From Macrostomum hystrix (taxonomy: Eukaryota > Animalia > Platyhelminthes), in assembly GCA_950097015.1 (NCBI GenBank), contig CATNEN010000030.1, positions 4,402,001-4,466,000 on the forward strand: a stretch of DNA of 64,000 nucleotides, in the 5' to 3' direction. Shown here in pieces: positions 6,101-36,004 of the stretch; position 1 is the stretch's first letter, and every line of letters starts with the position of its first letter. The translations under genes and the position numbers were made by a program. The notes beneath the pieces were generated by a model. It did not search any database. It was not told the DNA's origin and saw nothing but the letters and a program-made list of their open reading frames with translations.

Positions 6101-6747
6101 TTGAAAAATAAGTTTTCTATAGCAATGCACTCAACTCTGCATTGCTTCGGCTCACCCAGCAAAGTCCAAAAGGACTGAACTGCAGCGCAGCAGCTGCGGC
6201 TGTGCTGTCGGCTGCTACACCAATTTGGACAGTTGCAATATACAATGTATAGTTTAGTTATATTCTTAGAAAAGCCGAACTGCTTTAACGAAATCCATTC
6301 AATAAAAGAGAAGGCTGACAATGAGTACATGCATTATGTGACAATAAGAATCGAACTGGGAAGCAACAGCGGGACAAACCATTTTTGGCAAAGTTAAAAG
6401 TAAAAAAAATACTGAAACAATTAAAGTCAAAGAACTTCTAGCAGCTTCGAATAAACAAAACTCTAAACAAATTGCCTACAAATAGCCAATTAGCTCGTAA
6501 TGCTCCAATGATAAACCTGATGCTTATACGGATTTCGGAACTATGAACTTGACTCTGATTAGTAATTGCACAGCAAAATAGCAACTGAAAAGTTATTATT
6601 ATAGAAACTGTTATTAATAAGAAATGGTTAATATGTGTTAATACGCAGTAGCTTATAGTAGAGCAGCAAGACGGTTGGGTTTACAAAAGAAAATAATTTA
6701 ATTACGCGCGCAATAATGCTGGAATAATTATTGGCTTTAATGTCGCC

Positions 6748-8169: not shown

Positions 8170-8199
8170 CTGGGTCAATCAGGTATAAAATCCCTTCAA

Positions 8200-8845
8200 C
8201 ATTGGAACTGAGACATCACCTACACTGTCACTATGGGAACTGAGACATCACCTGCACTATCACAATGGGGACCGAGACATCACCTGCACTGTCAGTATGG
8301 GAACCAAGACATCACCTGCACTGTCACTATGGGATCTGAGACATCACCTGCACTGTCAGTATGGGAACTGAGACATCACCTGCACTGTCACAATGGGAAC
8401 TGAGACATCACCTGCACTGTCACAATGGGAACTGAGACATCACCTACACTGTCACTATGGGAACTGAGACATCACCTGCACTATCACAATGGGGACCGAG
8501 ACATCACCTGCACTGTCAGTATGGGAACCAAGACATCACCTGCACTGTCACTATGGGATCTGAGACATCACCTGCACTGTCAGTATGGGAACTGAGACAT
8601 CACCTTCACTATCACTATGGGAACTGAGACATCACCTTCACTGTCACTATGGGAACTGAGACATCACCTGCACTGTCACAATGGGAACTGAGACATCACC
8701 TGCACCGTCAGTATGGGAACCAAGACATCACCTTCACTGTCACTATGGGAACTGAGACATCACCTTCACTGTCACTATGGGAACTGAGACATCACCTTCA
8801 CTGTCACAATGGGGACCGAGACATCACCTTCACTGTCACTATGAA
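8200..8845. repeat. 32-bp minisatellite (GGGAACTGAGACATCACCTGCACTGTCACTAT)n
   Basis: Tandem 32-bp period. Confidence 0.95.
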
Positions 8846-10440: not shown

Positions 10441-13400
10441 ACGGCGCTGGATGGGACATTGTTAGCAGCTAGCTAGTGTTAATGCTATTCGGGAGACAGT
10501 GACGAGACATCATTCTCATAAGTAAACCTAGGCTAGAACCCATTCTCGCTGTTCCCAATGGTCTAAGTTTAATAGACTTTAGGAAAGATTTTTTTCTTCT
10601 ACAGTTTTGCTGAAGTTCAGGGAAAATGATTCTGTGATCCCTACAAAGATATGAAGCTTTCCTACTTAAAAAATTGCCGATTTGGCTAGATTCTTTTAAG
10701 TTGACATAAAAATTTGGCTGAGTACAGTTAGAATAATCTTGAGACTTCTTTAGCCTATATAGATAGGCTATGCTAAAGACATAGTATATTGTCTTCTGAG
10801 CCTAGACTTTGTAGGTTTCTATCAGTTTTCAAGACAAATAAGTGATTGATTAGACTCCACACACATTTTAACTTATGGCTTGCAATAGTGGGCTGTGGGC
10901 ATGTGGGCTGTGGCTGACACGTTTAATAAATAAATACAAGGTATGTATACAAAATAGACAGCTTGTGAATGCCATTGGCAAATTACTATTTGTATCACTT
11001 ATACCATATAGAGTATATAAGCCAAGTGGTTGTGATATCTGACTCACTACTTAAAAGTCAGGTCCAGACATCACTAGTACAATTTGTGTCCCTTGGCAAA
11101 AACTGCATCTATTGAAGTAAAGTTTAAACCTATTTATTATTAACACACACTTTACCAAACCCAAAACCCATCAATCACAATTTCCTACTTAGTGTGGTAT
11201 TCCTATATATTAGGAGTACCCACTAAAGCACTGATGCCTATTGTAAAAAAATAATAAATAATAAATATGAGTAATCTTTACCCTTTGATTCTGTTGAATA
11301 TTAATCATATTTATTCTCTATTATCCCACAAACAAAATACCCAAGCACAAATTGCTTCTAAAATCTCTAATTTCACATGTCCCACTAAGTGTAGACATCC
11401 TGTGATACGGAGCAAATCCATAAAAAGTGGTTGTAGATTGAAAAACAATGAGGGTTTCTTTCTTTTAACTCAACATCCTTAAAACTGATTTGGACACAAA
11501 TTTATGAACTGACTAAAACAGTAACATGTTTAAAAAGCCTAGTAAACTCAGAGTTTAGCTATGAAATATATTTTATTATAGATCAATTTGTATAATAATA
11601 TAAATATCTTGAAAATACATTATATTTTTAGAAAGAAAACAAATATAATGGAGTTATTGTTAGTCAATCCAGTTATTTAATTTAATTTTTACATGCAAAA
11701 AGGAACAAAGTTAATTCATCATGTTTGTATAGAAAGTGGTGCATTTCAAAATTTGTTGAGTAACCAGGAGGGAAAGATCAGCCAATTTTTTATTTTAAAG
11801 ATTTGAACTAGGTTGACAAAGACTAATAATGATTAATTATTGTTACCAGAATTATTTTTTGCTTTTGTAACCCTCTAGTCTAATTACAAAATTAGCACAA
11901 AAACAATAGCTTTAGGCCAATCAGAGGAAATTTAAGTCCAATACATATATACTTTTTCCATCTTTTCATCTGCTGTCATCTTGTCGCTATTATATCGCTG
12001 AATATAAAAAACAACTGTAACAAAGTCACCTGCTATGGCTTTATTCATTACAAAATAAAATATCATAACGATAATATGCATATGCAATGCACAATTTCAT
12101 ATTGTTCAGGTGCTTTTATGTCCGCGTCACTTTAGTCTGCTCGACATCTAAACAAGATTTGACTCATTTTAAAGGCTCTTCTCACGGTCATCAAATCAAA
12201 TGCTGTGTTTACATGTTCTTCTTTTGTCGAGTAAAGTATTGTCAGAAAATATATAGGCCCTAAAATATTAATAAATCAACACCCATAGATGGTGTGTGCG
12301 TTTTATTCATAAAAATAATAATGTGTGCTAATTATTAATCTGCTGAATGAATTCCATTAGCCTACAAATTAGTCAACTCGTCTGTTGGCAGACGAGATGG
12401 CGGCAGGCGAAGAGACTGGAACCCCATGTACTCAAAAAGGGCAGCATGAGACAGACATTGATACTGATAGCTGAATTATGAAATCACAACGAGAATCCGA
12501 AATAAATGTGGCCACTGTAAGGTGAGGTGATACAATAAAGCAATTAGTTTTAGATAATAGCAAATGCTTCGCATTTATACGTATCCAGTACGGGATCGAT
12601 TGGAAAAACAACGAACTGGCAGCCCGGCCGACCCGAGAATAGCGCTTGCTAGATTGAGGATACTAAGTACTGATTTCACCGCCACTGGATTTCACCGATT
12701 TTTTAAATAAATTTTCAACAGCCAAAACTGTATAAAATCGATGGCGCAAGTTAATTTAGAGATGCGCCTAAATTTCTAGCACTGCGCGTTTCGTCGGGAC
12801 GGCAAAAGAGCGATTTTTTGTTTTATTATAGGCGGTGAATCGGCGGTGAATCAGATAAATGTAAATTATATTTTGCGCGTTATTGCGCATGAAAAGCGGT
12901 GTTATATTTTAAGTTTACATGCCTTTGCGCGATCCTTTTTGCATCTTAGAGTCGTTTTATATGCCTTTGGCTTCATGAAATAGCCTGTTGAAATATTACT
13001 TTTAAAACAAAGCTGGCGCGAATTCGAAATCAATACACATGCTGGAAGAAATTAGAAGTTGGCTATTCGTAGGCCTACGGTACCCACTCGTGTTACACTC
13101 TGTAAAGCCAATTCTGTGTTACAACACGAGCCTTCAAAGCGGTTCTCTGCGCGCAGCGGCGTAGCGATACGCGCAGCTTTAGCTTTCAAAGTCAATGCAA
13201 TGCTTTAATATGGGGCACAAATGTACGTGCTTAAATATAATATAATCAATGCTGTTAGATATCGTTTCAATGACTGACTCTTTTATAGAGTTACCAGGAT
13301 CAATACAATCGATTCGATACAGTGTCTTTACAATTTATTTGTATATTATTGTTTCCTATAGGCCTATTATTGCTAATTATAATTTGCTAGCTATTGAATG

Positions 13401-14099
13401 TTGGCCTACCTATGCCTAGCTAGATATGAATGGATGGCTATAGGCCTATAGCCATAGTTATAAACAGACCCCATGGCTCAGACCATAGTAGAAAGTTTAG
13501 CTAGCAAATATAGCTAGCTTCTAGCAAAAATCTAGCTAAAAAGCATGTTCTGCTAGACATTAGCTATTTAGAATGTTTTCCTAGCTAGGCTTGTTAAAGA
13601 ACAGGCACAGCCCCAAGCCTAAGCTAATAGTGTGATAGCTACTATTATGAGTACTATTATTAATATTTATTGCTAAACAGCAACACAAGTAAAATTTATA
13701 GTTTATTAGAAGCTGACATATTTAAATTTTATTATCATATTTATTTTTTAACCATGAAATAATAATTCAATAATTTATTAATTCTTATATGGCTTAGATA
13801 TATTCAAATATATATAGGCTCATAGACAGCTAGATTATTGCCAAAAAATATTTCTTAGGAATAATAACTAATGACAAATATGTTTGTTTCTATATATTAT
13901 ATAAATATATATACTTTTTTGTTTCTTTTCCATTCCTTTTCTCCTATTCATTGCTCCTGTTCCTCTGGCTCATTTACTACCCTTGCTACTCTTCATCCTG
14001 CTACCTGTTCCTTTATCAACTGCTCTACTACCCCCTGTTCCCCTATCAACTCCTCCTCCACCCACTGTTTCTCTACCAACTGCTTCTTTACCCCCCTGC

Positions 14100-14630
14100 T
14101 CCTCTACCCTACTCTTCTACACCTTGCTCCTCTACTGGCCCTGCCTCTCTACCCCTGCACCTCTACCCTACTCTTCTACACCTTGCTCCTCTACTGGCCC
14201 TGCCTCTCTACCCCTGCACCTCTACCCTACTCTTCTACACCTTGCTCCTCTACTGGCCCTGCCTCTCTACCCCTGCACCTCTACCCTACTCTTCTACACC
14301 TTGCTCCTCTACTGGCCCTGCCTCTCTACCCCTGCACCTCTACCCTACTCTTCTACACCTTGCTCCTCTACTGGCCCTGCCTCTCTACCCCTGCACCTCT
14401 ACCCTACTCTTCTACACCTTGCTCCTCTACTGGCCCTGCCTCTTTACCCCTGCACCTCTACCCTACTCTTCTACACCTTGCTCCTCTACTGGCCCTGCCT
14501 CTCTACCCCTGCACCTCTACCCTACTCTTCTACACCTTGCTCCTCTACTGGCCCTGCCTCTTTACCCCTGCACCTCTACCCTACTCTTCTACACCTTGCT
14601 CCTCTACTGGCCCTGCCTCTCTACCCCTGC
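14100..14630. repeat. 59-bp minisatellite in left arm (~9 copies; ~7 in right arm at ~32270-32690)
   Basis: One-base shift per 60-nt line gives a period of 59. Confidence 0.9.
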
Positions 14631-14764
14631 ACCTCTAACCCCTGCTCCTCTAACCCCTGCTCCTCTACCCCAGCACCTCAACCCCTGCTCCTCTAACCCC
14701 TGTTCCTCTACTGGCCCTTCTACTCTACCCATGCTCCTCTACCACAGCTCCTCTAACACTTTCT

Positions 14765-15700
14765 GTTCCTTGATAGTCCCCTCCCCCATCCTCCATGGCA
14801 TTCCTCCTGCCATCCTTGACAGTCCCCTCCCCATCCTCCATGGCATTCCTCATGCCATCCTTGACAGTCCCCTTCCCATCCTCCATGGCATTCCTTCCGC
14901 CATCCTTAATAGTCCCCTCTCCCATCCTCCTTGGCATTCCTTCCGCCATCCTTAATAGTCCCCTCCCCATCCTCCATGGCATTCCTCCTGCCATCCTTGA
15001 CAGTCCCCTCCCTTATCCTCCCTGGCCTTGACAGTCCCCTCTCCCATCCTCCTTGGCATTCCTTCCGCCATCCTTAATAGTCCCCTCCCCATCCTCCATG
15101 GCATTCCTCCTGCCATCCTTGACAGTCCCCTCCCCATCCTCCATGGCATTACTCCTGCCATCCTTGACAGTCCCCTCCCCATCCTCCATGGCATTCCTTC
15201 CGCCATCCTTAATAGTCCCCTCCCCATCCTCCATGGCATTCCTCCCGCCATCCTTGACAGTCCCCTCCCCATCCTCCATGGCATTCCTCATGCCATCCTT
15301 GACAGTCCCCTTCCCATCCTCCATGGCATTACTCCTGCCATCCTTGACAGTCCCCTCCCCATCCTCCATGGCATTCCTCCTGCCATCCTTGACAGTCCCC
15401 TCCCCATCCTCCATGGCATTCCTTCCGCCATCCTTGACAGTCCCCTCCCCATCCTCCATGGCATTCCTCCCGCCATCCTTGACAGTCCCCTCCCCATCCT
15501 CCATGGCATTCCTCATGCCATCCTTGACAGTCCCCTTCCCATCCTCCATGGCATTCCTTCCGCCATCCTTAATAGTCCCCTCCCCATCCTCCATGGCATT
15601 CCTCCTGCCATCCTTGACAGTCCCCTCCCTTATCCTCCCTGGCCTTGACAGTCCCCTCTCCTATCCTCCTTGGCATTCCTCCCGCCGTCCTTGATAGTCC
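14765..15700. repeat. 45-bp minisatellite in left arm (~21 copies; ~16 in right arm at ~31430-32135)
   Basis: 15-aa periodic ORFs (MEDGEGTVKDGGRNA). Confidence 0.9.
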
Positions 15701-16369
15701 CCTCCCTCTTCCCAGCACCTCTTTCATTCCCCCTGCTTTTGAAAAATTGGCTGTTTTGTCTAAATTAAAAAATAAAAAGGTACAACATCCTATTACCTAT
15801 GTTTCCTTTCAGGAACATGTGGCTCTCGCTGGAAGTTTCTATAAGCACATCCTGTTCGACTTGTCCTGAGTCAATTTTCGGTGCACATTCGAGATGCACA
15901 TTTTCGGAGCCCTTGATCCTGTGCTCTGACGGATATTTCAGAGCTATGACTGCTCAGACTACAAAAGTACAGCCAGGGTTGACGTTGACTGTCAGTTTTT
16001 TTTATTATAATATTTCGCTAGTCAGCGCGTAAGGCTGATAATTACATATCTTGAGAAACACTCTTGTCATTCGACAGTATTTTCGCTATTTTACACTGAG
16101 TACACCAAACCTTAAGCATTTCGCAGTTTGATGCCCTATTTTTATGATAAATATACTAGCTATTTGAAAGCCATTAAACGATGCGCATACTTATATTATT
16201 CTCCTGTAAGGCGTACGTTTCAAACAATTTCTACAACAAATTCTCATCTTTCAGTGTTAGCAGCTGTACTCTTCAGCGGTTCAGTTGCCTGTCAAATTGT
16301 TTGGTTCTTTTATGGTTTCTGAACTATCTTCATGGCAAGATCCCAAACAGAATCCTCGCAACTGATCCC

Positions 16370-17100
16370 CATCGAGATGGGTTGCCACACATTCATCAGC
16401 GACCGGGTCCTGATCCCCATCATGCAGGGTTGCCACACATCCATCAGCGACCGGGTCCTGATCCCCATCATGCAGGGTTGCCACACATCCATCAGCGACC
16501 GGGTCCTGATCTCCATCATGCAGGGTTGCCACACATCCATCAGCGACCGGGTCCTGATCTCCATCATGCAGGGTTGCCACACATCCATCAGCGACTGGGT
16601 CCTGATCCCCATCATGCAGGGTTGCCACACATCCATCAGCGACCGGGTCCTGATCTCCATCATGCAGGGTTGCCACACATCCATCAGCGACCGGGTCCTG
16701 ATCCCCATCATGCAGGGTTGCCACACATCCATCAGCGACCGGGTCCTGATCTCCATCATGCAGGGTTGCCACACATCCATCAGCGACCGGGTCCTGATCT
16801 CCATCATGCAGGGTTGCCACACATCCATCAGCGACCGGGTCCTGATCCCCATCATGCAGGGTTGCCACACATCCATCAGCGACCGGGTCCTGATCCCCAT
16901 CATGCAGGGTTGCCACACATCCATCAGCGACCGGGTCCTGATCCCCATCATGCAGGGTTGCCACACATCCATCAGCGACCGGGTCCTGATCTCCATCATG
17001 CAGGGTTGCCACACATCCATCAGCGACCGGGTCCTGATCCCCATCATGCAGGGTTGCCACACATCCATCAGCGACCTGGTCCTGATCCCCATAGTGCAGG
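16370..17100. repeat. 48-bp minisatellite in left arm (~15 copies; ~6 in right arm at ~30462-30770)
   Basis: 16-aa periodic ORFs (IMQGCHTSISDRVLIP). Confidence 0.9.
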
Positions 17101-17720
17101 AGGGTCACAAAGACTATAGCTATACTTATTGCAATTTAATTTTTAGGTATGTGTGAATAAAATAACAAAAATAACAATTAATAATTGCTGCCTTTTGTAC
17201 AAGCCAAAACTGCTGACATGTGTATGAACTATTTTACATGCATGATACTTTAATCAGCGACTAATACACCTATAAATCAAACGCTCGTAATACGAGCTAG
17301 TATCGATATTTGGGCCAAAAATTGTAGCATCGTTTCATCCCTATATAGGGACACCGACGACAGCAATATACTACTAACAGTAGTCAGAGTCGATAAAATT
17401 ACTAAAAAGTAAGAAAATGGTCATAACTTTTTTTCTTCCAATGATACTGAGCTCGGACCGCCTAGAATGAGTTTCCCGTCCGAAAATAGTTTAGAAAACA
17501 CAGTACCTAATAGTATGGAAGCAGTCGGCTAGGTACGAGTACTTGAAATGTTTTCGCATGTATTTCGTCTAATCTTCATTTACGAATACATAAATGCATC
17601 GGGTCTACATATGACAAACTGTATCGGAAATGCGTCGGGTAATTGACCCTCAAAGTGGAAACTCATACAAATAAGGTTTTAGATGATATTACCTGTAGAC
17701 TAAGTAAATGGATGAATAAC

Positions 17721-17784
17721 TATAGGGATGAAACGATCCTAAAATTTTTGGCCGAAATATCGATACTATTACGAGCGTTTGATT
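17721..17784 (-). repeat. Inner stub of the right foldback arm, cut off by the LINE insertion
   Basis: Reverse complement of 17275-17345 with 3 substitutions and a 7-bp indel; ends in the LINE TSD GAGCGTTTGATT (17773-17784). Confidence 0.9.
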
Positions 17785-17917
17785 GCTCGCACCGGCGGGA
17801 CACAACGCCTGTGAGTTATGAGTCAGTCCAGGCCCACGGGCTAAGGTCTGCGATGCCTCACACCTGCATGAGTCGCTTTTTGAGCAGGCTTGGCAGGAAG
17901 GAGCCCTGTGCCTTCGG

Positions 17918-18760
17918 GTGCCGACCGAAGCTGCCGGGGCGGGAGGCCTCCGGCCCACCTATCCGGCCCCTGAGGAAGGCAGGGCGCCTGAAGCCAAGGA
18001 GGGGGTTCCCCTGCCGGTTTATCGCACTGCATTGGACCCTCAGCCCGGTATCAGTGTAGCCAAGCCAGCCGGGGCGGCGGGCGCGGAAGGCCCTAGGCCT
18101 GCCTGCCCTGCCGCCCTGGAGGGTGGGGCCTCTGCCACCGCGGCTGGGGGGAGTCGTAACAACCGGCCCACCTTCGCCGCCGTCGCAAAGAGACAGCCGG
18201 CGATCGTCTTGCTCGGCAGAGACGCACGTCTGACTGCCGACCAGCTGAAGCAGGCGAGCCGCGTCATCGACGGGCTCCTGTGGAAGCAAACCCTGAAGGG
18301 CACGCCCCTGGCCATAAAGACCCACGCCACGCGGGACTCGGGCCTGCTCATCTGGCCCAGCGATGCCGAGTCAGGCCGGCGCCTCCTGGAGATGCTGCCT
18401 GGGCAGAACTGGGAAGCCAATATGGCCTTCCACCGAGAGGACGAGCCACCCCAGATGAAGAGGCACCGCATCTTAGTTCCGGCGGCCAGCGTCGTTACCT
18501 CCTCGGAAGAGTTGCCGAATGGACTGCTTGCAGTCAACCGCGACCTGCCTGCCGCGGGCCTAGGGTGCACGACACCATTCAGCATCCCGAGGGTCGGGGC
18601 TTCACCGCCATTCTTGGCCTGTCGGACGTCTGGATGCGCAAGTACCCAGACGACACAGATCGCCATCGGCCTCCTAAAGCTGCGCATCAGAGCTTTTGTG
18701 GCAGACAAGCGCCGAAAGCGGGCGCGAACCCAACTGAGGCAGCAGCCGAAGGAGCTTCAG
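17918..18760 (+). pseudogene. Probable ORF1 of LINE A (frameshifted; fused in this frame to the APE N-terminus)
   Basis: Position upstream of APE; TFAAVAKRQPAIVLL segment recalls the DUF4780-like ORF1 of Loa/Lian elements (from memory, unverified). Confidence 0.5.
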
Positions 18761-20236
18761 CCCCTAAGGCAGCAAAGCTCTCAGATAGGGGACACAAAGC
18801 CCAGCATAGCCGCGCTGGTAAGGCAGATCGCGCTGTTGAGGGGGGCTCTGATCGCCACCCAGCGCGCTCCACTAAGCGGAAAGGCCTCCTGCAGAGGGCC
18901 GCAGAGGCAGTCCAGTCTGCCAAGCTGACCCACCTAATGAGGGAGGTCTCCGGCCAGTCAAGGCGAGTTGCCCAGCCTAGGGCGACTGGCGGCGCCACCG
19001 GTGGGCCCAGCTCCAAAGGTAAAGCCCCAAAACGTGCCCTCTGGGTACAACTGCTTCTGCGTTAGCCCCCGCGAGGCGAACCGGCCACCTAGAGCCTGTA
19101 TCTTCGGGGCCAAAACCCTCGGTGCTTGGCTCAGATCCGACCTGTCTAACGGGGATATCTGCGTCATTCAATCTGAGGATCTGCTGCCTGGGAAGACCAC
19201 CCTCGTTGCCTCGGTTTACCTACCAGGTGACGCAGCGGTCGTCCCCCGGACGCTCCCGGAAGTCTGCTCTGCCAGGAACTACGAGCTCATGGTCGCCGGC
19301 GATATCAACACCCACCATACCCACTGGGGCAGCACAGGGATAAACCAGAGAGGCGAAGACCTCCTGTCCTATGTTGCCTCTACGACCCTTGAGTTCTGCA
19401 ACTCCGGGTCTACACCTACCTTCGACAATGGTCGCTGGTCAGAGGTGATTGACGCCACACTCGCATCACCCAAGCTCTTTCAGAGTATTGGGGAGTGGCG
19501 CGTGCTCCCGGTGCCATCCCTCTCTGACCATAAGTTAATTCACTTTCGTGTGGCGAGCGCTCGCAGCCTTAACCACATCACGTGGAGACGGAACGCCAGA
19601 AATACTGATTGGGAAGCCTTCAGGCATGCCCTGGAGGCAACCCATCGGTCTTCGGGCCAACCACCCACTATTTCGATGTGCCGAGAAGCGGACGAGTGCG
19701 CGACTGTTTTAACAGAAACGCTAACCGCCGCCTTCGAGGCAGCCTGTCCCCTAAAGGCCTACAAAGGCAAGACATCTGCGCCGTGCTGGAATCCTGAGCT
19801 CGGCGACCTCCCTCGCAGAGCGAAGAAATTACACCGCAGAGCAAACAAAACCAGGAGCCCTGCAGAGCAGACCGCCTACCTTGAAGCCATCCATGAGTTC
19901 AAGAGGGAGATCAGGAATGCCAAGGCCCAGAAGTGACGTCAATACTGCGAGGAGCTAGAAGGCTCACGCCCACCTCCAGGATTGTCAAAGCACTTACGTT
20001 GGACAAAATTGTCATGCCGTAGTCTAATAGCACTCACGTATCGCTTTGCCGGTCAATCTAATATGTACATGCATCACTAACTCTCGCTCACTATGTACAT
20101 GCCCCCCACGCGCACGTTGATCGTATCGGTTGCACGTTGAGGCAAATATATAAATACTGTCTCGCCCTACTTGGAGGGCTCACCTTTTTCTTCGCACCTC
20201 ACGCAGCTTGACTCTTGAGCCATTACATTGGCGTCC

Positions 20237-21442
20237 ATGGCCTTCCTACAACTGCCCCCACCAGCCCACTTTAGCATCAGAGACGACCCTCACTCTGTAA
20301 GCAAGCGCTGGCAGGAGTGGTCGACAAACCTTCTGCGGTACCTGGCGGCAACCGGCATCAAAGATGAGACGCAGAAACGCCAGATCCTTCTGTATACGGC
20401 AGGCAAAGAAGTGAGCGACCTGTACAACGAGATCGCCACCCAGTCGCAGCAACAAGAAGGCGAGCCCGCAGCCGAGCCCACGGTCGACCAGCTGATCGCA
20501 CAGTTCAGCACGCACTTCCAAGGCCGCGATAACGTCGTCTTCATTCGATACCAGTTTCGCCACTGTCTCCAGGAAGAAGGCGAATCCATAGACGCTTGGC
20601 ACAGCAGACTGTGGAGCGCCTCGGAAGCCTGCAAGTTCGAGGGTCTCCGCCAGTCGCTCATCAGGGACCAAATCGTGGCCAGCTGTCGCAGCGAGTCACT
20701 GAGGAAGCGCCTGCTGAATATCCCCAACATCAGCCTGTCGGACACTCTCCAGCTGGCCAGGACGCACGAGGCAGCAGAGAAGCAGGCGGCCATCATGACC
20801 AGGACAGCGGCAGCCTCTGAGGAAGTGGCGCAACTGCGCCGCCAGCGCCACCCGCTCCCGGAACCTTCGCGTGAGTCGCAGCAATTTGCTAAGTGCATCC
20901 GGTGCGGCGAGCTGGGCCACAAGAGCTGCAGCAGGGCGCAAGGCAAGCGATGCAGCAGCTGCGGCAAGGCCAACCATCTGGCCAAGGCCTGCCTCAGCAG
21001 CCGCTCGAAGATTAACTCACTGCAGCCCGAGCAGGACCAGTCAGCCGACCAACCACCTAACGAGGTGTTCTGCACGCTCAGCGGCAAGGACGACAGCGCC
21101 AAGTTCGTCATCAGAATCAACGGCAGTCCGGTCCGCACACTGATCGACAGCGGAGCGAGCTGCAACGTGTTGGACATGGCGACGTTCCACAGAATCTGCC
21201 GGCCCGGCACGCCGCTTTCACCGTCCAGCACCACAGTCTTTGCGCTTGGTGCCAGCGAGCCACTGAAGACAGCCGGCCAAACAACGCTCACTGTCAGAGC
21301 GAACCACCGCGAATTGCAGGCCAATTTCATCGTCATCAGCAGCAACTGCACACCGATTCTCGGAAGATCGTCCAGCACAAAGCTCGGCATGCTGAGAGTC
21401 GGACCTGAAGTCAGCACGAACTCTGCGGTGGTGGCCAGCTAA
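20237..21442 (+). CDS. gag: Gypsy gag-protease
   Basis: Zinc knuckles CIRCGELGH and CSSCGKANHLAKAC; aspartic protease LIDSGASCNV; ATG at 20237. Confidence 0.9.
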   Translation: MAFLQLPPPAHFSIRDDPHSVSKRWQEWSTNLLRYLAATGIKDETQKRQILLYTAGKEVSDLYNEIATQSQQQEGEPAAEPTVDQLIAQFSTHFQGRDNVVFIRYQFRHCLQEEGESIDAWHSRLWSASEACKFEGLRQSLIRDQIVASCRSESLRKRLLNIPNISLSDTLQLARTHEAAEKQAAIMTRTAAASEEVAQLRRQRHPLPEPSRESQQFAKCIRCGELGHKSCSRAQGKRCSSCGKANHLAKACLSSRSKINSLQPEQDQSADQPPNEVFCTLSGKDDSAKFVIRINGSPVRTLIDSGASCNVLDMATFHRICRPGTPLSPSSTTVFALGASEPLKTAGQTTLTVRANHRELQANFIVISSNCTPILGRSSSTKLGMLRVGPEVSTNSAVVAS

Positions 21443-24216: not shown

Positions 24217-27144
24217 ATTGCTTGATTGACAGACTAAAGTTACAAGGACTGTTCTAAAAACAATTATATTGTTGCCTGCTACTACTTCTTTCATTTTATT
24301 CCCTATAATTTTTCATCCACTTGAGGAGGACTTTCATGCCGTAGTCTAATAGCACTCACGTATCGCTTTGCCGGTCAATCTAATATGTACATGCATCACT
24401 AACTCTCGCTCACTATGTACATGCCCCCCACGCGCACGTTGATCGTATCGGTTGCACGTTGAGGCAAATATATAAATACTGTCTCGCCCTACTTGGAGGG
24501 CTCACCTTTTTCTTCGCACCTCACACAGCTTGACTCTTGAGCCATTACAAAAATGTCGAAGCTCTCCTCGGTAAAGCGAACCGACGGCACGTCAACTGAC
24601 AACCCTGGGGAAACGCTGGAGGTCATGCTCTCTGCCTTCTTCCCCAACGAGCCAACCAACCCGACCACCTCAGACCACACTGAGGGAGGCCAGATGCTGG
24701 CTTCCTCTATCATCACGGAGGACCGCATCGTTAAAGCGGCCACCTCCGTTAAGCCTTTTAAGGCTCCAGGACCTGATGGCATCGTACCTGCTTTTCTTAG
24801 AGAGGCGGTTAAATGCCCAGGTTTCCTGCGCTCTCTTTGCAGCCTCTATCGAGCCTGCATCACGCTCGGGTACGTCCCGCAGGCATGGACCGAGGCGAAG
24901 GTGATTTTTATCCCGAAGCCAGGCCGCCCGGACTACCAGTCCATTAAATCCTTCAGACCAATCAGCCTAACCACCTTCCTGGTCAAGCTGATGGAGAGAC
25001 TTGTGCTTTGGCGCCTTCTCTCAGTGGAACTGAAGAACGCGCCGCTCAGCGACAACCAGCATGCTTTTCGGGCGGGTCGCTCCACTGAAAGCGCGCTTCA
25101 CGTTATGGTCGACAAATTGGAAAAAGCTGTGCTTGGCACCGGCTTCGCCTTAAGTGTCTTCCTGGACATCGATGGTGCCTTTGACAACGTCCTCTTCGAG
25201 GCGTTCCGCAAAGCCCTTTGTGAGAGACACACTCACTCGTCCCTCACCAGATGGATCATGTATATGATCAGTCATCGCACGGTCACTGCCAACCTGCTGG
25301 GCCACCAACGGACGGTCCCCGTCCGCAAAGGGAGCCCGCAGGGAGGGGTTCTCTCTCCTATTCTCTGGAACATGGTCATTGACGAACTCCTCCGAGACGC
25401 TCGTCCTGACCCAATCCTGAAGGTGGGTTATGCGGACGATGTCACAGCTGATCCCGATGGCCCATCCCCTGATACTCTCAGGGACCTACTTCAGAATTTC
25501 ATCCGCTCTGCTGAACAATGGGCGGGTCGCTGTGGTCTGAAGCTCTCTGAGACCAAGACTGCAGTGATCATGTTCACCAGCAGAAACAAATGGCAGATAC
25601 AGCCGCTTAGGCTTTACGGTAAGGAAAAGGATCACCCTGGACCATAGGCTGAACTGGTCTCCCAATGTTCAAACCAAAACCAAGAGGGCCCTCGCGATCC
25701 TCGCGCAGCTGCGAAGGGCCGTCGGCACCACCTGGGGGCTCACCCCCAAGCGCCTCTGGTGGATCTATACTGCAATTGTCAGGCCAGCTGTCTCGTACGG
25801 CAGCTTGATCTGGGCTAGCGCCCTGCAGATAAAGACCTGCCTGGAGGCACTTAGGAAAACGCAAGGGCGCGCCTGTCGCATGACCATGAGTGCCCCACAG
25901 TCGGCTCCTTACGACGGCCTCAATGCCTTCCTCGACGCTCCCCGTTGGACATTTTTGTCCGCAGGGAAGCCGCTAAAACAGCGCGTCGGCTCATTGACGC
26001 CGGCGTCCGCTTCACGCCGCAGAGAGCAATGGCAAAGCGCAAACTTCTGCCTCACACCGATCTGTGCCTTCGAGACTTGGAAGATAGCGGCGGACTCCAC
26101 GTCTTATCTGACGGCGAACCACGCACTCTCAATCTCACCCAACGCTACAAAATCATCATCCCCTCGAGGGAAGACGCTAACGACCACTGGAACCACCAGG
26201 AGGTCCACTGCTATACGGACGGATCCCTTAAAGACGGCCTTGCCAGGCTTTGGGGTCTGCATCCTGATCAATGGCCGCGTCGTCGCCACGCTTGCCCAAC
26301 ATACTGTGAGACTTTCTACGGTCTTCCAGAATGAAATCCTTGCCATCAGCTCCTGTGCCGCAGAGCTGAATGCCAGGAATACGAGAGGAGAGACTATCAT
26401 CATCCACTCTGACAGCGAAGCGGCCTTACAAGCCCTTTGCCGCACCACGTGCTCCCGGACAGTCGCTGACTGTGCCCGGCAACTCAACCTCCTGGCCCGT
26501 AACAACACGGTCAGGCTGAGCTGGATCCCAGGGCATGCGGGCTTCCCAGGGAACGAGCTTGCGGATACCCTTGCCAAGCAAGGTGGCTCTGGCTCTCTCC
26601 TTGGCCCTGCTCCCCTGGTCCCGATCCCCATCACGGTCCTCAACCGCCTCATTGATGACTGGGCTGAGTCCCTCCACAGGGACAGATGGGCGGGCACCCA
26701 GAACTGTCGGCAATCCCGTGCCGCAGTTCCGCGCCCGTCTCGCAGGCTTAGGAACATCCTTTTGAATCAAAGCGGATATCCGCGCCCTCGCCATGACCCT
26801 CACGGGCCACGGCTACCTCGCTAGGCACTGTTTCCTCCGGGGCGACCTTGAGAGTGAAATCTGCCCATTCTGTGAGTACGACAGCGAAGATGCTGAGCAC
26901 TTTGTGTGTCACTGCCCTTTCTTTAACAGAGACCGGCTACGCTACCTCGGGCCCAACCCGTCTATGGACGAGATCTGCCAGCCCGACAGCATTCCACGGC
27001 TCGTCCAGTTCCTCCGGGCAACAAGACGAGCCACGTTCTTCCCTACGGAAGACAACGCTGCAGGACGGACCGGCGGACCACCCTGACCGGCCCCGCGCCC
27101 TTGCCTGTCTGCGGGCCTACAGGGGTTAGCGGCATGGGCGATCC

Positions 27145-30100
27145 TCACCATCAAGAACATCAACGACCACAGGCACAAAGGCACAAACCTTAATTTCTGC
27201 AATGCCAGAAGCACCCCAACTTTCGACAATGGCCGTTGGTCAGAGGTCCTCGATGTGCACCCTCGTCTCCCCGGGCGTCCTCGCCAGGATATCCGGCTGG
27301 AGAGTGTGGGGAGAAGAGGAGTCCCTCTCAGACCATCGCCTCATCCGCTTCGAGGTCGTAAATGCTACCCCGAAGAGAACTATCACCTGGAGCAGGAACA
27401 TCCGAAACACCGACTGGACCAGGTTCGGCCTTGAGCTGAGCATGGGTCTGCGTGACATCGGCACCCCAGGTGACATCACAAACTGCAACATAGCTGACTA
27501 GATAGCCTCCAAGCTTGGAGGCACGGTCATCGATGCCTATGAGGCGGCCTGTCCCCTCAAAGCCTATAAAGGCAAGAAATCTGCCATCTGGTGGAACCCC
27601 GAGCCCGGAATCCTGAGACGACGAGCAAAGGCTCTGCAGAGGATATTTCTAAAAACCAGGACCCCTGAAGACAGAGAAGCCTATGTTCATGCCAGTCATG
27701 AGTTCAAGGGCCAGGTCAGAAGGGCAAAAGCGGCCAAGTGGCGCCAATACTGCGAAGGGCTTGAGGGCTCCCGCCCCACTGCCGACGTGGTAAAAGCGCT
27801 CACTTAAGACAGCTTCTCCAAACTAAACGCTCTAGCTCATGCTCGGGCATTTCTTCCCCAGCATCCAGACAGCGCAGGGCCAGCCAGACCACACTGTGGG
27901 CGGGCAAGACCTAGCAAAGTCTCTCGTCACCAAATACCGCATCATACGTGCGGCAAATTTCTTTAATCCGTACAAAGCACCGGGCCCGGACGGCATCTAC
28001 CCGGTCCTACCCCTCCTTCATCTACGGCATCTACCCTCCTTCCTGAAGCTGCTTGAGAGACTGGTGCTCTGGCGCCTTCTCTCTGGGGAGCTCAAGCGTT
28101 TCCCTCTCTCTCAGAACCAGCACGCTTTTAGGGCTGGCAGGTCCACTGAGAGCGCCCTCCACTCCATCGTGGAAAAGCTGGAACGGGCTGTGCTGGGTAA
28201 CAGCTTCGCCCTTTCCTTTTTCATCGACATCGAGGGGGCCTTCGATAACGTCCGTTTCGAAACGTTTCGTAGAGCCCTTAAATCTAGGGCCACGCACCCC
28301 CACCTTTTCCGCTGGATCATGTACATGATCCAGCACCGCTCTGTGATGGCCAACCTCAATGGGCTCTCGCTTTCAGCGCCAGTCCAGAAAGGGGGCCCGC
28401 AGGGCGGGATTCTTACTCCTCTCCTTTGGAATCTTGTCATGGATGAGCTGCTTGAGGATGCTCAGCCAGATCCGGTCCAAAAAGTGGGATACGCTGACGA
28501 TGTGACCGCCACCTGCGCGGGACCTTCAGCGGACACCACTAGGGACCTCATCCAGGGTTCCATCAACAGAGCTGAAAGCTGGGCGACCCGCTGCGGGCTC
28601 AGACTCTCCGAGTCCAAGACCGTGGCGATCATGTTTACCAGCAAGCTGCGTTGGACCATGAAACCCCTCACTCTCTACGGCAAGGACATGCCTTGGTCTG
28701 ATCTTGGACCATATGCTAAACTGGAGTCACCACCTCCGCTTCAAAACCAAGAGGGCCTTGGCGATACTGGCGTAAGTTAGGCGAGCCGTTGGGAACACTT
28801 GGGGCCTCACCCCCCAGATGCTCTGGTGGATCTACACAACGATCATCAGACCTTCGATCTCGTACGCCAGCCTCATCTGGGCTAGCGCCACGAGTACCCA
28901 GGGAAACCTGGATGCGCTTTACAGGGTGCAGGGCAGAGCCTGTCGCATGACCATGGGCGCCTCACCCTCCACTCCCTTCAAAGGCATGAACGCCTTCCTG
29001 GGAGCCACTCCTTTGGACATCTTCGTCAAGGGAGAAGCCGCGAAGAGCACCATATAGGCACCTTATGGATGCCGGCGTGACTTTCAATTTCTCGAGAGCC
29101 TTCAAAAAGCGCTCTCTCACTCCCCACTCCGATCTGTGCCTGAAGATTCTGGTGAGTGCGAGTGCAACATCCTCTCCGATGCAATACCCGCCACTCTGAT
29201 CCTGAGCCACAGGTACAAGGTCGAAATTCAGCCTTGCCAGGAGGCAAACGACAGCTGGACCGACCCTGAAATCCACTGTTATACCGACGGCTCCCTGATG
29301 AACGGAATCTCGGGATTCTGTATCTACCCTGTAGGAGTCTGTATCTACAATGGAGGAGAGGTCACCTGGACTCACTCCCAGCACACTGGGAAAAACTCCA
29401 GCGTTTTCAGAACGAGATGTTCGCTATCAGTTCATGTGCAGCAGAGTTGCACCAGAGGGGGCTCACTGACCGGAAGATCATTTTCCACTCCGACAGTCAA
29501 GCCGCCCTCCGGGCCCTCGACCGTGCTCTAAGACCACCTTGGACTGCAACGCCCAGCTCAACGGGCTGGCACGGGCCAACGAGGTCAAGCTCAAATGGAT
29601 CCCAGGTCACGCTGGCTTCCCAGGGAATGAGATGGCGGACCAGCTCACAAAAGCTGGAGCAGCCAGCACCCTGGCGGGGCCAGGGCCTGGCGCTCCTATC
29701 CCCGTCACTGTGACCAACCTCAAGCTGAAGCGCTGGATGGAGGCCCAGCACCTGGACAGATGGACCAAGACCCAGAAATGCAAGCAGTCCAGGGCAGCGG
29801 TCCCATGTCCGTCTCACCGCCTGCACAAAGCCCTCTTAAAGCTGAACCGCAGAGATCTCCGCGCAGTAAGCATGGCCCTCTCAGGGCATGGCTGTTTTTC
29901 TCGGCATCGATATCTCCAGGGCCAGCTCCGGAGGACAAATGCACCTTTTGTAGCTCGGGCAGCGAAAATGCCGAGCACTTCATCAGTTTTCACCAGGGCA
30001 AAGCTACCTTAGGCCTAACCCAACTCTCTCCGATTTGCAGGCCCGAGAGCATCCCTCAGCTTGCCCGGTACCTACGGGATACGGGGCGAGCCAACGTCTT

Positions 30101-30275
30101 CCCCACCGACAGTGCGGAGGACCACGCTGCAGGCGAGTCCGACGGGCCACCCTGAGCAACACCACCTCTCCTGAGGTCGTCTGGTTTGCGAGGGGTTAGC
30201 GGAATGGGCGGTCCCCTCCGCCTCCTCGCTGCGTCCGCCGGTACGGAGCACCCTGCAGCTAAGTCAGTAAGTCAA
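27145..30275 (+). mobile_element. 5'-truncated degenerate non-LTR retrotransposon B (same superfamily as A, different subfamily)
   Basis: Starts inside APE (TPTFDNGRWSEVLD), RT (PQGGILTP, YADD), RNase H (YTDGS, WIPGHAG); ends in a TAAGTCAGTAAGTCAA tail abutting the TSD GAGCGTTTGATT (30276-30287). Confidence 0.88.
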
Positions 30276-30287
30276 GAGCGTTTGATT

Positions 30288-33200
30288 TATAGGTGTATTA
30301 GTCGCTGATTAAAGTATCATGCATGTAAAATAGTTCATACACATGTCAGCAGTTTTGGCTTGTACAAATGGCAGCAATTATTAATTGTTATTTTTGTTAT
30401 TTTATTCACACATACCTAAAAATTAAATTGCAATAAGTATAGCTATAGTCTTTGTGACCCTCCTGCACTATGGGGATCAGGACCCGGTCGCTGATGGATG
30501 TGTGGCAACCCTGCATGATGGAGATCAGGACCCGGTCGCTGATGGATGTGTGGCAACCCTGCATGATGGAGATCAGGACCCGGTCGCTGATGGATGTGTG
30601 GCAACCCTGCATGATGGAGATCAGGACCCGGTCGCTGATGGATGTGTGGCAACCCTGCATGATGGGGATCAGGACCCGGTCGCTGATGGATGTGTGGCAA
30701 CCCTGCATGATGGGGATCAGGACCCGGTCGCTGATGAATGTGTGGCAACCCATCTCGATGGGGATCAGTTGCGAGGATTCTGTTTGGGATCTTGCCATGA
30801 AGATAGTTCAGAAACCATAAAAGAACCAAACAATTTGACAGGCAACTGAACCGCTGAAGAGTACAGCTGCTAACACTGAAAGATGAGAATTTGTTGTAGA
30901 AATTGTTTGAAACGTACGCCTTACAGGAGAATAATATAAGTATGCGCATCGTTTAATGGCTTTCAAATAGCTAGTATATTTATCATAAAAATAGGGCATC
31001 AAACTGCGAAATGCTTAAGGTTTGGTGTACTCAGTGTAAAATAGCGAAAATACTGTCGAATGACAAGAGTGTTTCTCAAGATATGTAATTATCAGCCTTA
31101 CGCGCTGACTAGCGAAATATTATAATAAAAAAAACTGACAGTCAACGTCAACCCTGGCTGTACTTTTGTAGTCTGAGCAGTCATAGCTCTGAAATATCCG
31201 TCAGAGCACAGGATCAAGGGCTCCGAAAATGTGCATCTCGAATGTGCACCGAAAATTGACTCAGGACAAGTCGAACAGGATGTGCTTATAGAAACTTCCA
31301 GCGAGAGCCACATGTTCCTGAAAGGAAACATAGGTAATAGGATGTTGTACCTTTTTATTTTTTAATTTAGACAAAACAGCCAATTTTTCAAAAGCAGGGG
31401 GAATGAAAGAGGTGCTGGGAAGAGGGAGGGGACTATCAAGGACGGCGGGAGGAATGCCAAGGAGGATAGGAGAGGGGACTGTCAAGGCCAGGGAGGATAA
31501 GGGAGGGGACTGTCAAGGATGGCAGGAGGAATGCCATGGAGGATGGGGAGGGGACTATTAAGGATGGCGGAAGGAATGCCATGGAGGATGGGAAGGGGAC
31601 TGTCAAGGATGGCATGAGGAATGCCATGGAGGATGGGGAGGGGACTGTCAAGGATGGTGGGAGGAATGCCATGGAGGATGGGGAGGGGACTGTCAAGGAT
31701 GGCGGAAGGAATGCCATGGAGGATGGGGAGGGGACTGTCAAGGATGGCAGGAGGAATGCCATGGAGGATGGGGAGGGGACTGTCAAGGATGGCAGGAGTA
31801 ATGCCATGGAGGATGGGGAGGGGACTATTAAGGATGGCGGAAGGAATGCCAAGGAGGATGGGAGAGGGGACTGTCAAGGCCAGGGAGGATAAGGGAGGGG
31901 ACTGTCAAGGATGGCAGGAGGAATGCCATGGAGGATGGGGAGGGGACTATTAAGGATGGCGGAAGGAATGCCAAGGAGGATGGGAGAGGGGACTATTAAG
32001 GATGGCGGAAGGAATGCCATGGAGGATGGGAAGGGGACTGTCAAGGATGGCATGAGGAATCCCATGGAGGATGGGGAGGGGACTGTCAAGGATGGCAGGA
32101 GGAATGCCATGGAGGATGGGGGAGGGGACTATCAAGGAACAGAGAGTGTTAGAGGAGCTGTGGTAGAGGAGCATGGGTAGAGTAGAAGGGCCAGTAGAGG
32201 AACAGGGGTTAGAGGAGCAGGGGTTGAGGTGCTGGGGTAGAGGAGCAGGGGTTAGAGGAGCAGGGGTTAGAGGTGCAGGGGTAGAGAGGCAGGGCCAGTA
32301 GAGGAGCAAGGTGTAGAAGAGTAGGGTAGAGGTGCAGGGGTAAAGAGGCAGGGCCAGTAGAGGAGCAAGGTGTAGAAGAGTAGGGTAGAGGTGCAGGGGT
32401 AGAGAGGCAGGGCCAGTAGAGGAGCAAGGTGTAGAAGAGTAGGGTAGAGGTGCAGGGGTAGAGAGGCAGGGCCAGTAGAGGAGCAAGGTGTAGAAGAGTA
32501 GGGTAGAGGTGCAGGGGTAGAGAGGCAGGGCCAGTAGAGGAGCAAGGTGTAGAAGAGTAGGGTAGAGGTGCAGGGGTAGAGAGGCAGGGCCAGTAGAGGA
32601 GCAAGGTGTAGAAGAGTAGGGTAGAGGTGCAGGGGTAGAGAGGCAGGGCCAGTAGAGGAGCAAGGTGTAGAAGAGTAGGGTAGAGGAGCAGGGGGGTAAA
32701 GAAGCAGTTGGTAGAGAAACAGTGGGTGGAGGAGGAGTTGATAGGGGAACAGGGGTAGTAGAGCAGTTGATAAAGGAACAGGTAGCAGGATGAAGAGTAG
32801 CAAGGGTAGTAAATGAGCCAGAGGAACAGGAGCAATGAATAGGAGAAAAGGAATGGAAAAGAAACAAAAAAGTATATATATTTATATAATATATAGAAAC
32901 AAACATATTTGTCATTAGTTATTATTCCTAAGAAAAATTTTTTGGCAATAATCTAGCTGTCTATGAGCCTATATATATTTGAATATATCTAAGCCATATA
33001 AGAATTAATAAATTATTGAATTATTATTTCATGGTTAAAAAATAAATATGATAATAAAATTTAAATATGTCAGCTTCTAATAAACTATAAATTTTACTTG
33101 TGTTGCTGTTTAGCAATAAATATTAATAATAGTACTCATAATAGTAGCTATCACACTATTAGCTTAGGCTTGGGGCTGTGCCTGTTCTTTAACAAGCCTA

Positions 33201-34124
33201 GCTAGGAAAACATTCTAAATAGCTAATGTCTAGCAGAACATGCTTTTTAGCTAGATTTTTGCTAGAAGCTAGCTATATTTGCTAGCTAAACTTTCTACTA
33301 TGGTCTGAGCCATGGGGTCTGTTTATAACTATGGCTATAGGCCTATAGCCATCCATTCATATCTAGCTAGGCATAGGTAGGCCAACATTCAATAGCTAGC
33401 AAATTATAATTAGCAATAATAGGCCTATAGGAAACAATAATATACAAATAAATTGTAAAGACACTGTATCGAATCGATTGTATTGATCCTGGTAACTCTA
33501 TAAAAGAGTCAGTCATTGAAACGATATCTAACAGCATTGATTATATTATATTTAAGCACGTACATTTGTGCCCCATATTAAAGCATTGCATTGACTTTGA
33601 AAGCTAAAGCTGCGCGTATCGCTACGCCGCTGCGCGCAGAGAACCGCTTTGAAGGCTCGTGTTGTAACACAGAATTGGCTTTACAGAGTGTAACACGAGT
33701 GGGTACCGTAGGCCTACGAATAGCCAACTTCTAATTTCTTCCAGCATGTGTATTGATTTCGAATTCGCGCCAGCTTTGTTTTAAAAGTAATATTTCAACA
33801 GGCTATTTCATGAAGCCAAAGGCATATAAAACGACTCTAAGATGCAAAAAGGATCGCGCAAAGGCATGTAAACTTAAAATATAACACCGCTTTTCATGCG
33901 CAATAACGCGCAAAATATAATTTACATTTATCTGATTCACCGCCGATTCACCGCCTATAATAAAACAAAAAATCGCTCTTTTGCCGTCCCGACGAAACGC
34001 GCAGTGCTAGAAATTTAGGCGCATCTCTAAATTAACTTGCGCCATCGATTTTATACAGTTTTGGCTGTTGAAAATTTATTTAAAAAATCGGTGAAATCCA
34101 GTGGCGGTGAAATCAGTACTTAGT
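30288..34124 (-). repeat. Right inverted arm of foldback (main part, 3837 bp)
   Basis: Reverse complement of the left arm. Confidence 0.95.
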
Positions 34125-36004
34125 ATTGAGGATATATTATAGTTGTCTAGGAAAAAGCTTATTTAAAAAGCTAAAACCGATAAAATTATTACAGTTAAGC
34201 AAATGAAAAATCAAAATTTGTTGCCAGAATATTGCTCTGACATTTATTGTAGACAAAAGCAGCTAAATAAAAATAAAATCACAAAATGGTTAAAGATGAT
34301 CTTGAATCTTAGTGAATTAAAAGAACTTATAAGCATTTAAAATTTACAAGCGTTTTAAACATACTTTGATAACTGAACTGAACATAACCGTGCGTTGGAG
34401 TGTCGTCGATTATTTTTCATTAATAAGTACTGAACAAAATGTGTTAAAAAAGAACTGAGGTTTGAGAAGCCTTGCTCAGGAAAAAGGGTGGTCTGAAATT
34501 AAAATTAAAATGGTGCAATTATAAATAGGATAATATACAGTAACTTATCAGCAGTACAGAGTACAAATTTAGACTAGTAGCTCACTTTAAAATGACAATA
34601 TGAAGCTTTATTAAATGCTTAATTTGTGGCTAAAGCTTATAACTGTCCCATAATTTGTTTTTACTTACATGATAATATTCTTTTTTACAGAGAATTTTTA
34701 GATGGATTTGTTTTGGTGCTTTTTGTTTATATTTCAGGTATATGTTACCATAAAACTCACGTTAGTAATTCTAACATATCCTCTGTACATTTAAAAAGTT
34801 TAGCAAATATTACTTCTAAGTAAATTTTTGAACAAAGGCAAAGGAACAAACATGAAGCATTTGACATTAGAAAAATGAAATGTTTCTAAGAATTTTACTA
34901 TATAAATTCACAACCACTTGTTTTAATCAATTCAAATTTGTTTAAAAAATGTTTTACTTAAAGTTTTTTTAAAGGAAATTGACAGAAATTTGACTATAAT
35001 TACAACAATTTAAACTATAAATATAGGCAACTAGAAGAAAGGAAAAACTACTTGTGGTTTCATACCACATTTGAATGAAATACTTAGAAGTGTTTTTTCA
35101 TTCTTTACAAATATATAGAGACGGATACTGAGAGAATTCAAAAGAGAGGGAGAAATAGAAAACATTTTTTGATCATTGGTAATGCTCTTCAGAAAACCTA
35201 TGCTCTTCAGAAATACATACATGTGATAAATTATTTAGCCAGAATTACTGAAATATACTACCTAGAAATATACTACATATGCTACTAGAATAACTAAATA
35301 TGATACCTAGAGAAACTAAATACACTACTGAGAAATAGTTATTTTTTAATATATAAAACACATTCTCAGAGACTAATTCCAAGAAAGAACTGGAGAAACT
35401 TAGAGACATTTATATTGAAATTACTTAGACATTATATTAAAATAACCTCTATAACAAATTTGGTTACATCATATCCTTCAAGTGATAATTATAGAGAACA
35501 CTAGAACAACTTTGGTGTCATAAGTAGGATATAAAAAATAAGCACTAGAACAACTTTGGTGGCATTGTGATAATAAAAAGTTTTAGAGTTTTAAATTACC
35601 CCTAGAACATAATTTTTTTATTTTATTTCTCTTGTATACATTTGTATCTTGTATACATACCTAACCCTTACCCTAACCCTTCTCTCTAAGTATTCCATAT
35701 TTGCTTTCTAGCTAGTTAATAATTAGGGAATCCACCTAATATGTTATTTCAAATGAAAAACTACAAAACACAGGTTATGCTTTTTGTGTGTAATAAACAG
35801 CTAAACTGTTTTGGCTTGTGAGGCATATATAAAAGTAGTTAACTATAACAAATTTTTTCCACTATTTTTATCAACGATCAATTGTAAAAACTTATGTTAT
35901 TTACTAGTACCTTTTATTTTAATTTATTTGCATTCCAGTGTCTTATATACCACAATTAACATTAACCTCTCATGTCTGCATTATCTGCATCGACTGCTCC
36001 AACA

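Follow-up and report, generated by a model that had tools for sequence, protein, structure and literature searches.

A low-copy family of giant foldback transposons in the flatworm Macrostomum hystrix, with retroelement cargo and a probable Mutator-type transposase

Contig CATNEN010000030.1 of the Macrostomum hystrix assembly GCA_950097015.1 contains a palindromic structure of 21,463 bp, which raises the questions of whether it is a mobile element, to which superfamily it would belong and by which enzyme it was moved. The window analysed here is the whole stretch of 64,000 nucleotides around it (positions 4,402,001 to 4,466,000 of the forward strand; G000:C30:4402001-4466000, where G000 is the assembly and C30 the contig), and positions without a prefix are those of the window. 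We conclude that 12662-34124 is very probably a foldback DNA transposon that is non-autonomous and belongs to the Foldback / NOF-Rehavkus branch of the Mutator superfamily.

The repeat finder showed the arms of this element to be 99-100% identical outside their tandem arrays, pairing 12660-14034 with 32752-34126 (1375 nt, 100%), 15268-16677 with 30453-31862 (99%) and 16794-17286 with 30276-30768 (98%). The left arm (12662-17345, plus strand, 4684 bp) is the reverse complement of the right arm, and an unpaired central loop of 375 bp (17346-17720) lies between the two. The right arm is split by a block of nested retroelements (17785-30275, plus strand) into an inner piece of 64 nt (17721-17784, minus strand) and a main part (30276-34124, minus strand), the first 12 nt of which are the second copy of the duplication that accompanies the insertion. 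The left tip reads ACTAAGTACTGATTTCACC... and the right tip ...GGTGAAATCAGTACTTAGT, its inverse; both are directly adjoined by a perfect 9-bp target-site duplication (TSD), ATTGAGGAT, the same 9-mer being found at 12653-12661 and 34125-34133. The 21.5-kb foldback that the first-pass annotation of this DNA had described, with its near-identical arms, loop of 375 bp and perfect TSD of 9 bp, was thus borne out. No second long inverted repeat was detected in the window, and the arm sequence has no further copy there.

Each arm consists of a unique outer part of 1.4 kb followed by arrays of 59-, 45- and 48-bp units. In the left arm (plus strand), these are a 59-bp array of 9.7 copies (14093-14668), 45-bp arrays (14767-15720) and a 48-bp array of 15.4 copies (16362-17100); the right-arm counterparts lie at 32237-32694 (7.7 copies), 31487-32138 (fewer copies) and 30462-30768 (6.4 copies). 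The right arm measures ~3.9 kb in total, and its smaller number of array copies accounts for the difference of ~780 bp between the arms. Array copy numbers vary between arms and also between copies of the element. The long open reading frames (ORFs) of the arms are read-throughs of the arrays, those of the insert encode retroelement proteins, and a six-frame search of the window element with the candidate transposase from contig C32, described below, gave no match, in agreement with the earlier view that no transposase ORF lies inside.

A search of the assembly (42 contigs, 220 Mb) with the first 200 bp of the element gave matches of 100% on contigs C38, C39 and C33, and of 91% on C32, C2 and C29. 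A 25-nt terminal pattern occurred at exactly 12 genome sites (reversed control: 0), and no element with these termini was found in the assembly beyond these 12 sites. The copies have the following lengths and TSDs: 21,463 bp and ATTGAGGAT (9 bp) on C30, the window copy; 20,274 bp and CAATTATCG (9 bp) on C38; 29,513 bp and GTTTTTCGG (9 bp) on C39 (G000:C39:8820434-8849946); 17,200 bp and TAATATGA (8 bp) on C32; and 15,015 bp and TCTGCGTCA (9 bp) on C2. On C39, the 9-mer abutting the left tip is found again 33 bp past the right tip, after AT-rich filler; the chance expectation of such a match within 50 bp is about 0.0002. A fourth copy with long arms lies on C33; one of its tips is complete, and the other is without its first 215 bp. 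The flanks of all copies are mutually unrelated, so the copies are not segmental duplications, and the right flank of the window element is single-copy in the assembly. The genome search with the termini, which the first-pass annotation had set as a check, therefore returned copies on five other contigs with TSDs of their own.

These copies also bear on the possibility that the structure is not mobile at all, but a palindrome produced in assembly or a segmental duplication in inverted orientation. Chimeric long reads can yield long perfect palindromes, and four public runs cover the stretch as short contigs that do not bridge the hairpin centre. However, the same termini lie on five other contigs within different flanks and next to different TSDs, a related element with a TSD is present in the M. 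lignano assembly, and one public-run contig ends exactly at 12662, the first base of the element; we therefore regard an artefact or an immobile duplication as extremely unlikely. Pieces of the element were recovered without differences in public runs filed under two organism labels.

The TSDs and the bases next to them fix the ends of the mobile element. With the M. lignano copy counted, five of the six complete copies have a 9-bp TSD, and the sixth, that on C32, has one of 8 bp. Among the five copies of the genome, ACTAAGT is preceded once by T, twice by G and twice by A (T in the window copy, G or A in the others), which rules out the alternative reading of a 7-bp TSD with TACT termini. The TSD range accepted for Mutator-like elements (MULEs) is 8-11 bp, typically 9 bp, and all the TSDs of the family fall within it. 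The ACTAAGT start had been considered unusual, but we found no evidence that it is diagnostic. Tm1, another Mutator-type foldback, is not G-initial either; these termini are specific to the family and are no mark of a new superfamily.

How the element acquired its present size can be read from the cargo. The block at 17785-30275 (12,491 bp) is bounded by a 12-bp duplication, GAGCGTTTGATT (17773-17784 and 30276-30287), and comprises a non-long terminal repeat (non-LTR) element encoding endonuclease, reverse transcriptase and RNase H, together with a second, related non-LTR fragment. Nested in the non-LTR element is an LTR element with identical 216-bp LTRs (20012-20227 and 24334-24549) that encodes protease, reverse transcriptase-RNase H and integrase. 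These cargo retroelements are dead. The block is common to the copies on C30, C38, C39 and C33 at 99.6-99.9% identity, and the alignments of the four long-arm copies are continuous through both junctions between arm and block. As cargo and junctions are the same in all four, the retro-insertions predate the latest transpositions: loaded units of 20-30 kb transposed after the retroelements had inserted. The hairpin of ~9 kb that had been proposed for the time before the retro-insertions is correct as arithmetic (21,463 - 12,491 = 8,972 bp), but the latest transpositions postdate the insertions.

The long-arm copies have changed since. C38 has lost one LTR through a 1.9-kb deletion, and it has kept the central loop; C30 is without 553 bp that C38 and C39 keep; and C33 has undergone several deletions. 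C39 has lost the hairpin centre (the loop and ~400 bp of arm) and gained a 7-kb LTR retrotransposon (334-bp LTRs 99.7% alike, one ORF of 1830 residues), which sits 27 bp upstream of the 3' LTR of the older LTR element. The terminal 1.34 kb differs by only 3-6 bases between C30, C38 and C39, and by 1, 1 and 4 bases between the arms within a copy. Furthermore, four single-base variants are present in both arms of one copy and absent from the other copies (window 12662-14001 versus 32785-34124, and the equivalents in C38 and C39), which points to intra-element conversion, and the arms of one element seem to homogenise each other. The window element moved recently, and the family is young.

Sequences resembling the arm interior (the arrays and their neighbours) were also observed, at 76-95% identity, at loci without ACTAAGT termini (G000 C3:567951-569605, C38:8256872-8258410, C38:22457239-22458341 and C8:2566057-2568199), including an inverted pair ~20 kb apart (C39:18486703 with 18506460). 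These may be older or related foldback families with the same arrays.

The copies on C32 and C2, whose mutual identity is 99%, define a second subfamily with short terminal inverted repeats (TIRs) of 468 and 517 bp, respectively. Their similarity to the long-arm copies is confined to the terminal ~385 bp (12662-13046 of the window, plus strand), at ~92% identity and with 1-2 changes in the first 26 bp, and the C32 alignment ends abruptly after ~385 bp. This terminal segment is probably the part recognised by the transposase. It contains the motif WTTCACCG, with two direct and two inverted copies at each end (12674-12681 and 12690-12697 direct, 12833-12840 and 12844-12851 inverted at the left end). 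The motif occurs 10 times in the window, against 3.2 occurrences expected, 8 of the 10 lying within 190 bp of the two tips, and the C32 and M. lignano elements have the motif as well; these copies are candidate transposase-binding sites. The match on C29 (L027:4253-4465; G000:C29:3174252-3174464) is a remnant of ~210 bp from the short-TIR subfamily, in which 30 nt of the left tip are joined to positions ~205-27 in inverted orientation, and which lacks the outermost ~26 nt on the right.

The short-TIR copies enclose a gene. On C32, it includes an exon that is open over 1266 codons (L029:2907-6707, minus strand), whereas on C2 a long interspersed nuclear element (LINE) interrupts the same frame after about residue 830, and the C32 copy of this large exon is the only uninterrupted one in the genome. 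Copies with the same ends around a probable transposase gene of the DDE (Asp-Asp-Glu) type, for which a search had been proposed, therefore exist, one with an intact exon and the other cut by the LINE. In M. lignano, contig NIVC01001984.1 carries a homologue of the gene inside an element of 6.5 kb, which has the ends ACTAACTACTGAATTCACCG and the inverse and a TSD of 9 bp, GTCTGGCCG; the gene is truncated by the right tip of the element. Conservation between the C32 and M. lignano elements is limited to the termini and the transposase gene, and the first ~130 bp of the element are conserved in M. lignano. The ratio of nonsynonymous to synonymous substitution rates (dN/dS) between the two genes is 0.13 over 675 codons (dS about 1.8), which indicates that the C32-type gene is under purifying selection. 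The stretch conserved in M. lignano begins 9 codons upstream of the listed GTG, precisely where the sequence resembles a splice acceptor, and the gene therefore has at least one upstream exon, which would carry the start codon. The strongest argument for this gene as the transposase of the family is that ends and gene have been kept together across species. The non-autonomous nature of the window element and its mobilisation in trans, both claimed in the first-pass annotation, hold; the view that the transposase was unidentified does not, as a DDE protein of the Mutator/NOF kind is encoded by relatives that share the ~385-bp ends, and this pairing recurs in M. lignano.

It could be asked whether the long-arm subfamily was moved by a different source of transposase, now lost or unassembled, with exactly matching ends. 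The two subfamilies are ~8% apart over their 385-bp ends, where the first 26 bp show 1-2 changes, the large exon of the C32 gene has a single uninterrupted copy, and the genome contains several diverged paralogous transposase families, all of which would fit such a source. However, the assembly contains no further element with these termini, the repeated terminal motifs have been retained in both subfamilies and in M. lignano, and non-autonomous relatives of TIR transposons with similar ends are cross-mobilised as a rule. A separate source thus appears unlikely, and we prefer mobilisation of the long-arm copies by the C32-type protein.

An exhaustive phmmer search with the C32 protein detected 46 homologues among 1.8 billion representative proteins, the best being a partial M. 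lignano protein (67% identity), which was the only protein returned by a word-indexed search with the single sequence and with a profile. The homologue clusters consist mostly of metagenome proteins, plus those of M. lignano and a clam. The homologue alignment identified D323 (LAIDSTG), D402 (VVTDFNWP), an invariant H464 and E641 (TEGSVEVYH) as conserved residues, a pattern typical of Mutator/IS256 transposases; the E641 motif reads TN..vE.W....K in relatives, and distant members have C.AH at the histidine position. Some homologues carry UCH, Ulp1 or PHD domains, with PHD and Peptidase_C48 seen in P0016 and P0038. Paralogous transposase families were also observed in the genome at 27-55% identity, several with long open frames (G000 C1:4095552-4099423, C1:12956191-12959185, C3:2223260-2224120, C2:6493942-6495627 and C11:3136152-3137837); at the two C1 loci, the N-terminal part and the C-terminal domain are both matched within a short distance.

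The AlphaFold2 model of the C32 protein has a mean predicted local distance difference test (pLDDT) score of 72, with most of the core above 85. The best solved structures by VIA-align were ISCth4, an IS256 transposase (Z 11.6), P element transposase (Z 10.7), Hermes (Z 9.1) and RAG1-like proteins, and Foldseek likewise matched RAG1, BbRAGL and ISCth4. IS256 is a bacterial relative of Mutator. The N-terminal sheet domain (residues ~93-204) gave low VIA-align matches to AFT2 (Z 5.7) and AtWRKY1 (Z 4.8), and Pfam gave no match to it. In the ESM Atlas shape search, a cluster that carries Peptidase_C48 and PHD and bears the name '120.7 kDa protein in NOF-FB transposable element' ranked second (template-modelling scores of 0.39/0.30 over 353 residues), with many MULE clusters below it, and the language-model feature search also returned MULE clusters. 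On the basis of fold, motifs and TSD, and not of a curated sequence model, we assign the protein to the Mutator superfamily, near NOF/Rehavkus.

Several results weigh against this assignment, or against its extension to the window element. Pfam searches with the C32 ORF, whole and in halves, gave no usable match, and the MULE model PF10551 did not match; a six-frame scan of the genome with PF10551 detected 44 canonical MULEs, none of them at the locus of the C32 gene. Two distant homologues match the Pfam MULE model, but only below threshold (E 0.002-0.0035), and the alignment by hhalign with one canonical MULE of the genome is weak (probability 17%, E 0.0015), with both aspartate motifs in register. 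Neither the start codon nor the upstream exon or exons of the C32 gene were located. No empty-site allele, of the form ...GCTAGATTGAGGATATATTATAG..., was found in the assembly by pattern search or in the contigs of the four public runs. The ends of the ORF-bearing and long-arm subfamilies are ~8% apart, and cross-mobilisation of the long-arm copies by the C32-type protein is thus an inference. PDB sequence searches with the ORF and the alignments also yielded low-complexity or chance matches only.

A foldback of another superfamily with 7-8-bp TSDs, namely P (like Galileo), hAT or Zisupton/KDZ, would account for the 8 matching bases of the C32 TSD and for the strong structural matches to P element transposase (Z 10.7) and Hermes (Z 9.1). 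Some homologues have protease tails, a feature of Zisupton. However, the TSD is of 9 bp in five of six complete copies, M. lignano included; Pfam detected no THAP, hAT-dimerisation or KDZ family in the C32 ORF; the best structural match is IS256, and the N-terminal domain bears a weak resemblance to WRKY/AFT domains, as in MULEs; and the Atlas neighbours are MULE and NOF clusters. Membership in one of these superfamilies is therefore very improbable. The Zisupton/KDZ identity, which the protease tails had prompted, was dropped in view of the 8-bp TSD of Zisupton (PMC12730594), the lack of a KDZ family by Pfam and the IS256/MULE neighbours.

In the C32 protein, a tandem-repeat linker rich in Gly, Arg and Ala is followed by a 347-residue C-terminal domain (L029:2907-3950), which is kept in the paralogous genome families at 43-50% identity and has a Cys-box-like NGMCAVNH and a His-box-like HYQLR...FDD, both conserved among the paralogues. 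All named matches of the Atlas feature search were UCH/USP (ubiquitin-specific protease) clusters, with scores of 0.90-0.94, and two distant homologues carry Pfam UCH tails. The domain itself had no Pfam or PDB sequence match, its AlphaFold2 model is poor (pLDDT 48), and Foldseek returned nothing meaningful. A USP-like deubiquitinase fold is thus a possible reading, and a reasonable lead, but it is not established. The linker is encoded by 24- and 12-bp tandem repeats, and its length is unequal in C2 and C32 (L023:7977-8243 versus L029 ~4000-4500). At 0.96, a cluster of vertebrate proteins, 'Chromosome 14 open reading frame 28', is the top Atlas feature neighbour of the C-terminal domain, ahead of UCH/USP, and it could represent a relative of this tail that was domesticated.

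From these features, the following mechanism can be proposed. The C32 protein, or a very close lost relative, would bind GGTGAAWTC-type motifs in the terminal ~190 bp, excise the element and reinsert it with a staggered cut of 9 bp at the target. Donor-site repair would raise the copy number and produce internal deletions, the tandem arrays of the arms would expand and contract by slippage or unequal exchange, and intra-element conversion would keep the two arms of each copy identical. A bolder proposal is that the family represents a Mutator clade invisible to Pfam in flatworms, molluscs and other taxa, in which a USP-type tail replaces Ulp1/PHD, and that it is still active and capable of moving 20-30 kb; we consider this tentative, and somewhat less likely to be right than wrong. 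If it were true, the family would amount to a natural vector for large cargo, with retrotransposons nested whole in one arm, in a flatworm genus used as a model, and a deubiquitinase-like tail would be a further case of the recurrent association of DNA transposases with ubiquitin/SUMO proteases.

The window also contains many unrelated minisatellite arrays with units of 20-32 bp over 1-9 kb (1099-8843 and 56311-58764), one of which repeats the 20-bp unit TGTGGGGCAGTTGCAGTGTC over 2.45 kb and has a strong G/C skew; none of them pairs as an inverted repeat within the window.

The family is of interest as a clean natural case of a foldback moving as a 20-30 kb unit after the uptake of retrotransposons, which bears on genome reshaping and on the spread of tandem repeats. 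It also pairs a gene-less foldback with its likely transposase, a pairing that many foldback families do not have; in Tetris, for example, no transposase-encoding copy is known (PMC4079207). Tools for transgenesis are of value in Macrostomum, a model for regeneration (PMC5730564), and a young endogenous DNA transposon that has defined ends of ~385 bp and one large transposase exon, and that has proved able to carry a large payload, is a possible vector to test in this genus.

Repeat-armed foldbacks with TSDs of 8-10 bp have been described, in the form of Drosophila FB and Tetris (PMC4079207), and the nematode foldback Tm1 has a Phantom-like MULE transposase (PMC3169594). Rehavkus, which is treated as sister to or part of Mutator, has a 9-bp TSD and a PHD finger (PMC6446971), and in Tribolium its inverted termini are more than 11 kb long (bioRxiv 10.1101/2024.12.02.626372). 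The flatworm elements probably form an undescribed family, as had been suggested, but one of a known kind and not a new class: long-armed foldbacks with array-bearing arms and 9-bp TSDs were already described. The family resembles FB / FB-NOF in its long, array-rich arms of variable length, its 9-bp TSD, the predominance of gene-less copies over a few with a large gene, and the position of the C32 protein beside the NOF protein cluster in the shape search. It differs from FB / FB-NOF in the host phylum and in having no detectable DNA or simple sequence similarity to it; furthermore, the flatworm protein has no PHD or Ulp1 (C48) match by Pfam, with a possible USP-like tail instead, and in the flatworm arms the arrays are preceded by 1.4 kb of unique outer sequence. 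With Rehavkus, compared here by description, the family shares the 9-bp TSD and, in some homologues of its protein, the PHD finger, but no PHD finger was found by Pfam in the flatworm protein itself, and Rehavkus has been reported from arthropods and annelids only. Tm1 is similar in its composite TIRs of tandem repeats, variable in length, its mostly 9-bp (8-10 bp) TSDs, and its one or few transposase-bearing copies amid many non-autonomous ones (PMC3169594). However, Tm1 elements are 1-2.6 kb long, with 14-bp repeats and a FLYWCH-bearing MULE transposase of 496 residues, whereas the flatworm elements reach 15-30 kb and have a transposase of more than 1270 residues that the Pfam MULE model does not detect. 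Galileo, finally, shares with the flatworm family TIRs that are kilobases long and repetitive inside, a dynamic structure and nested insertions (PMC3573991), but it is distinguished by 7-bp TSDs and a THAP-bearing P-type transposase, neither of which was seen in the Macrostomum elements.

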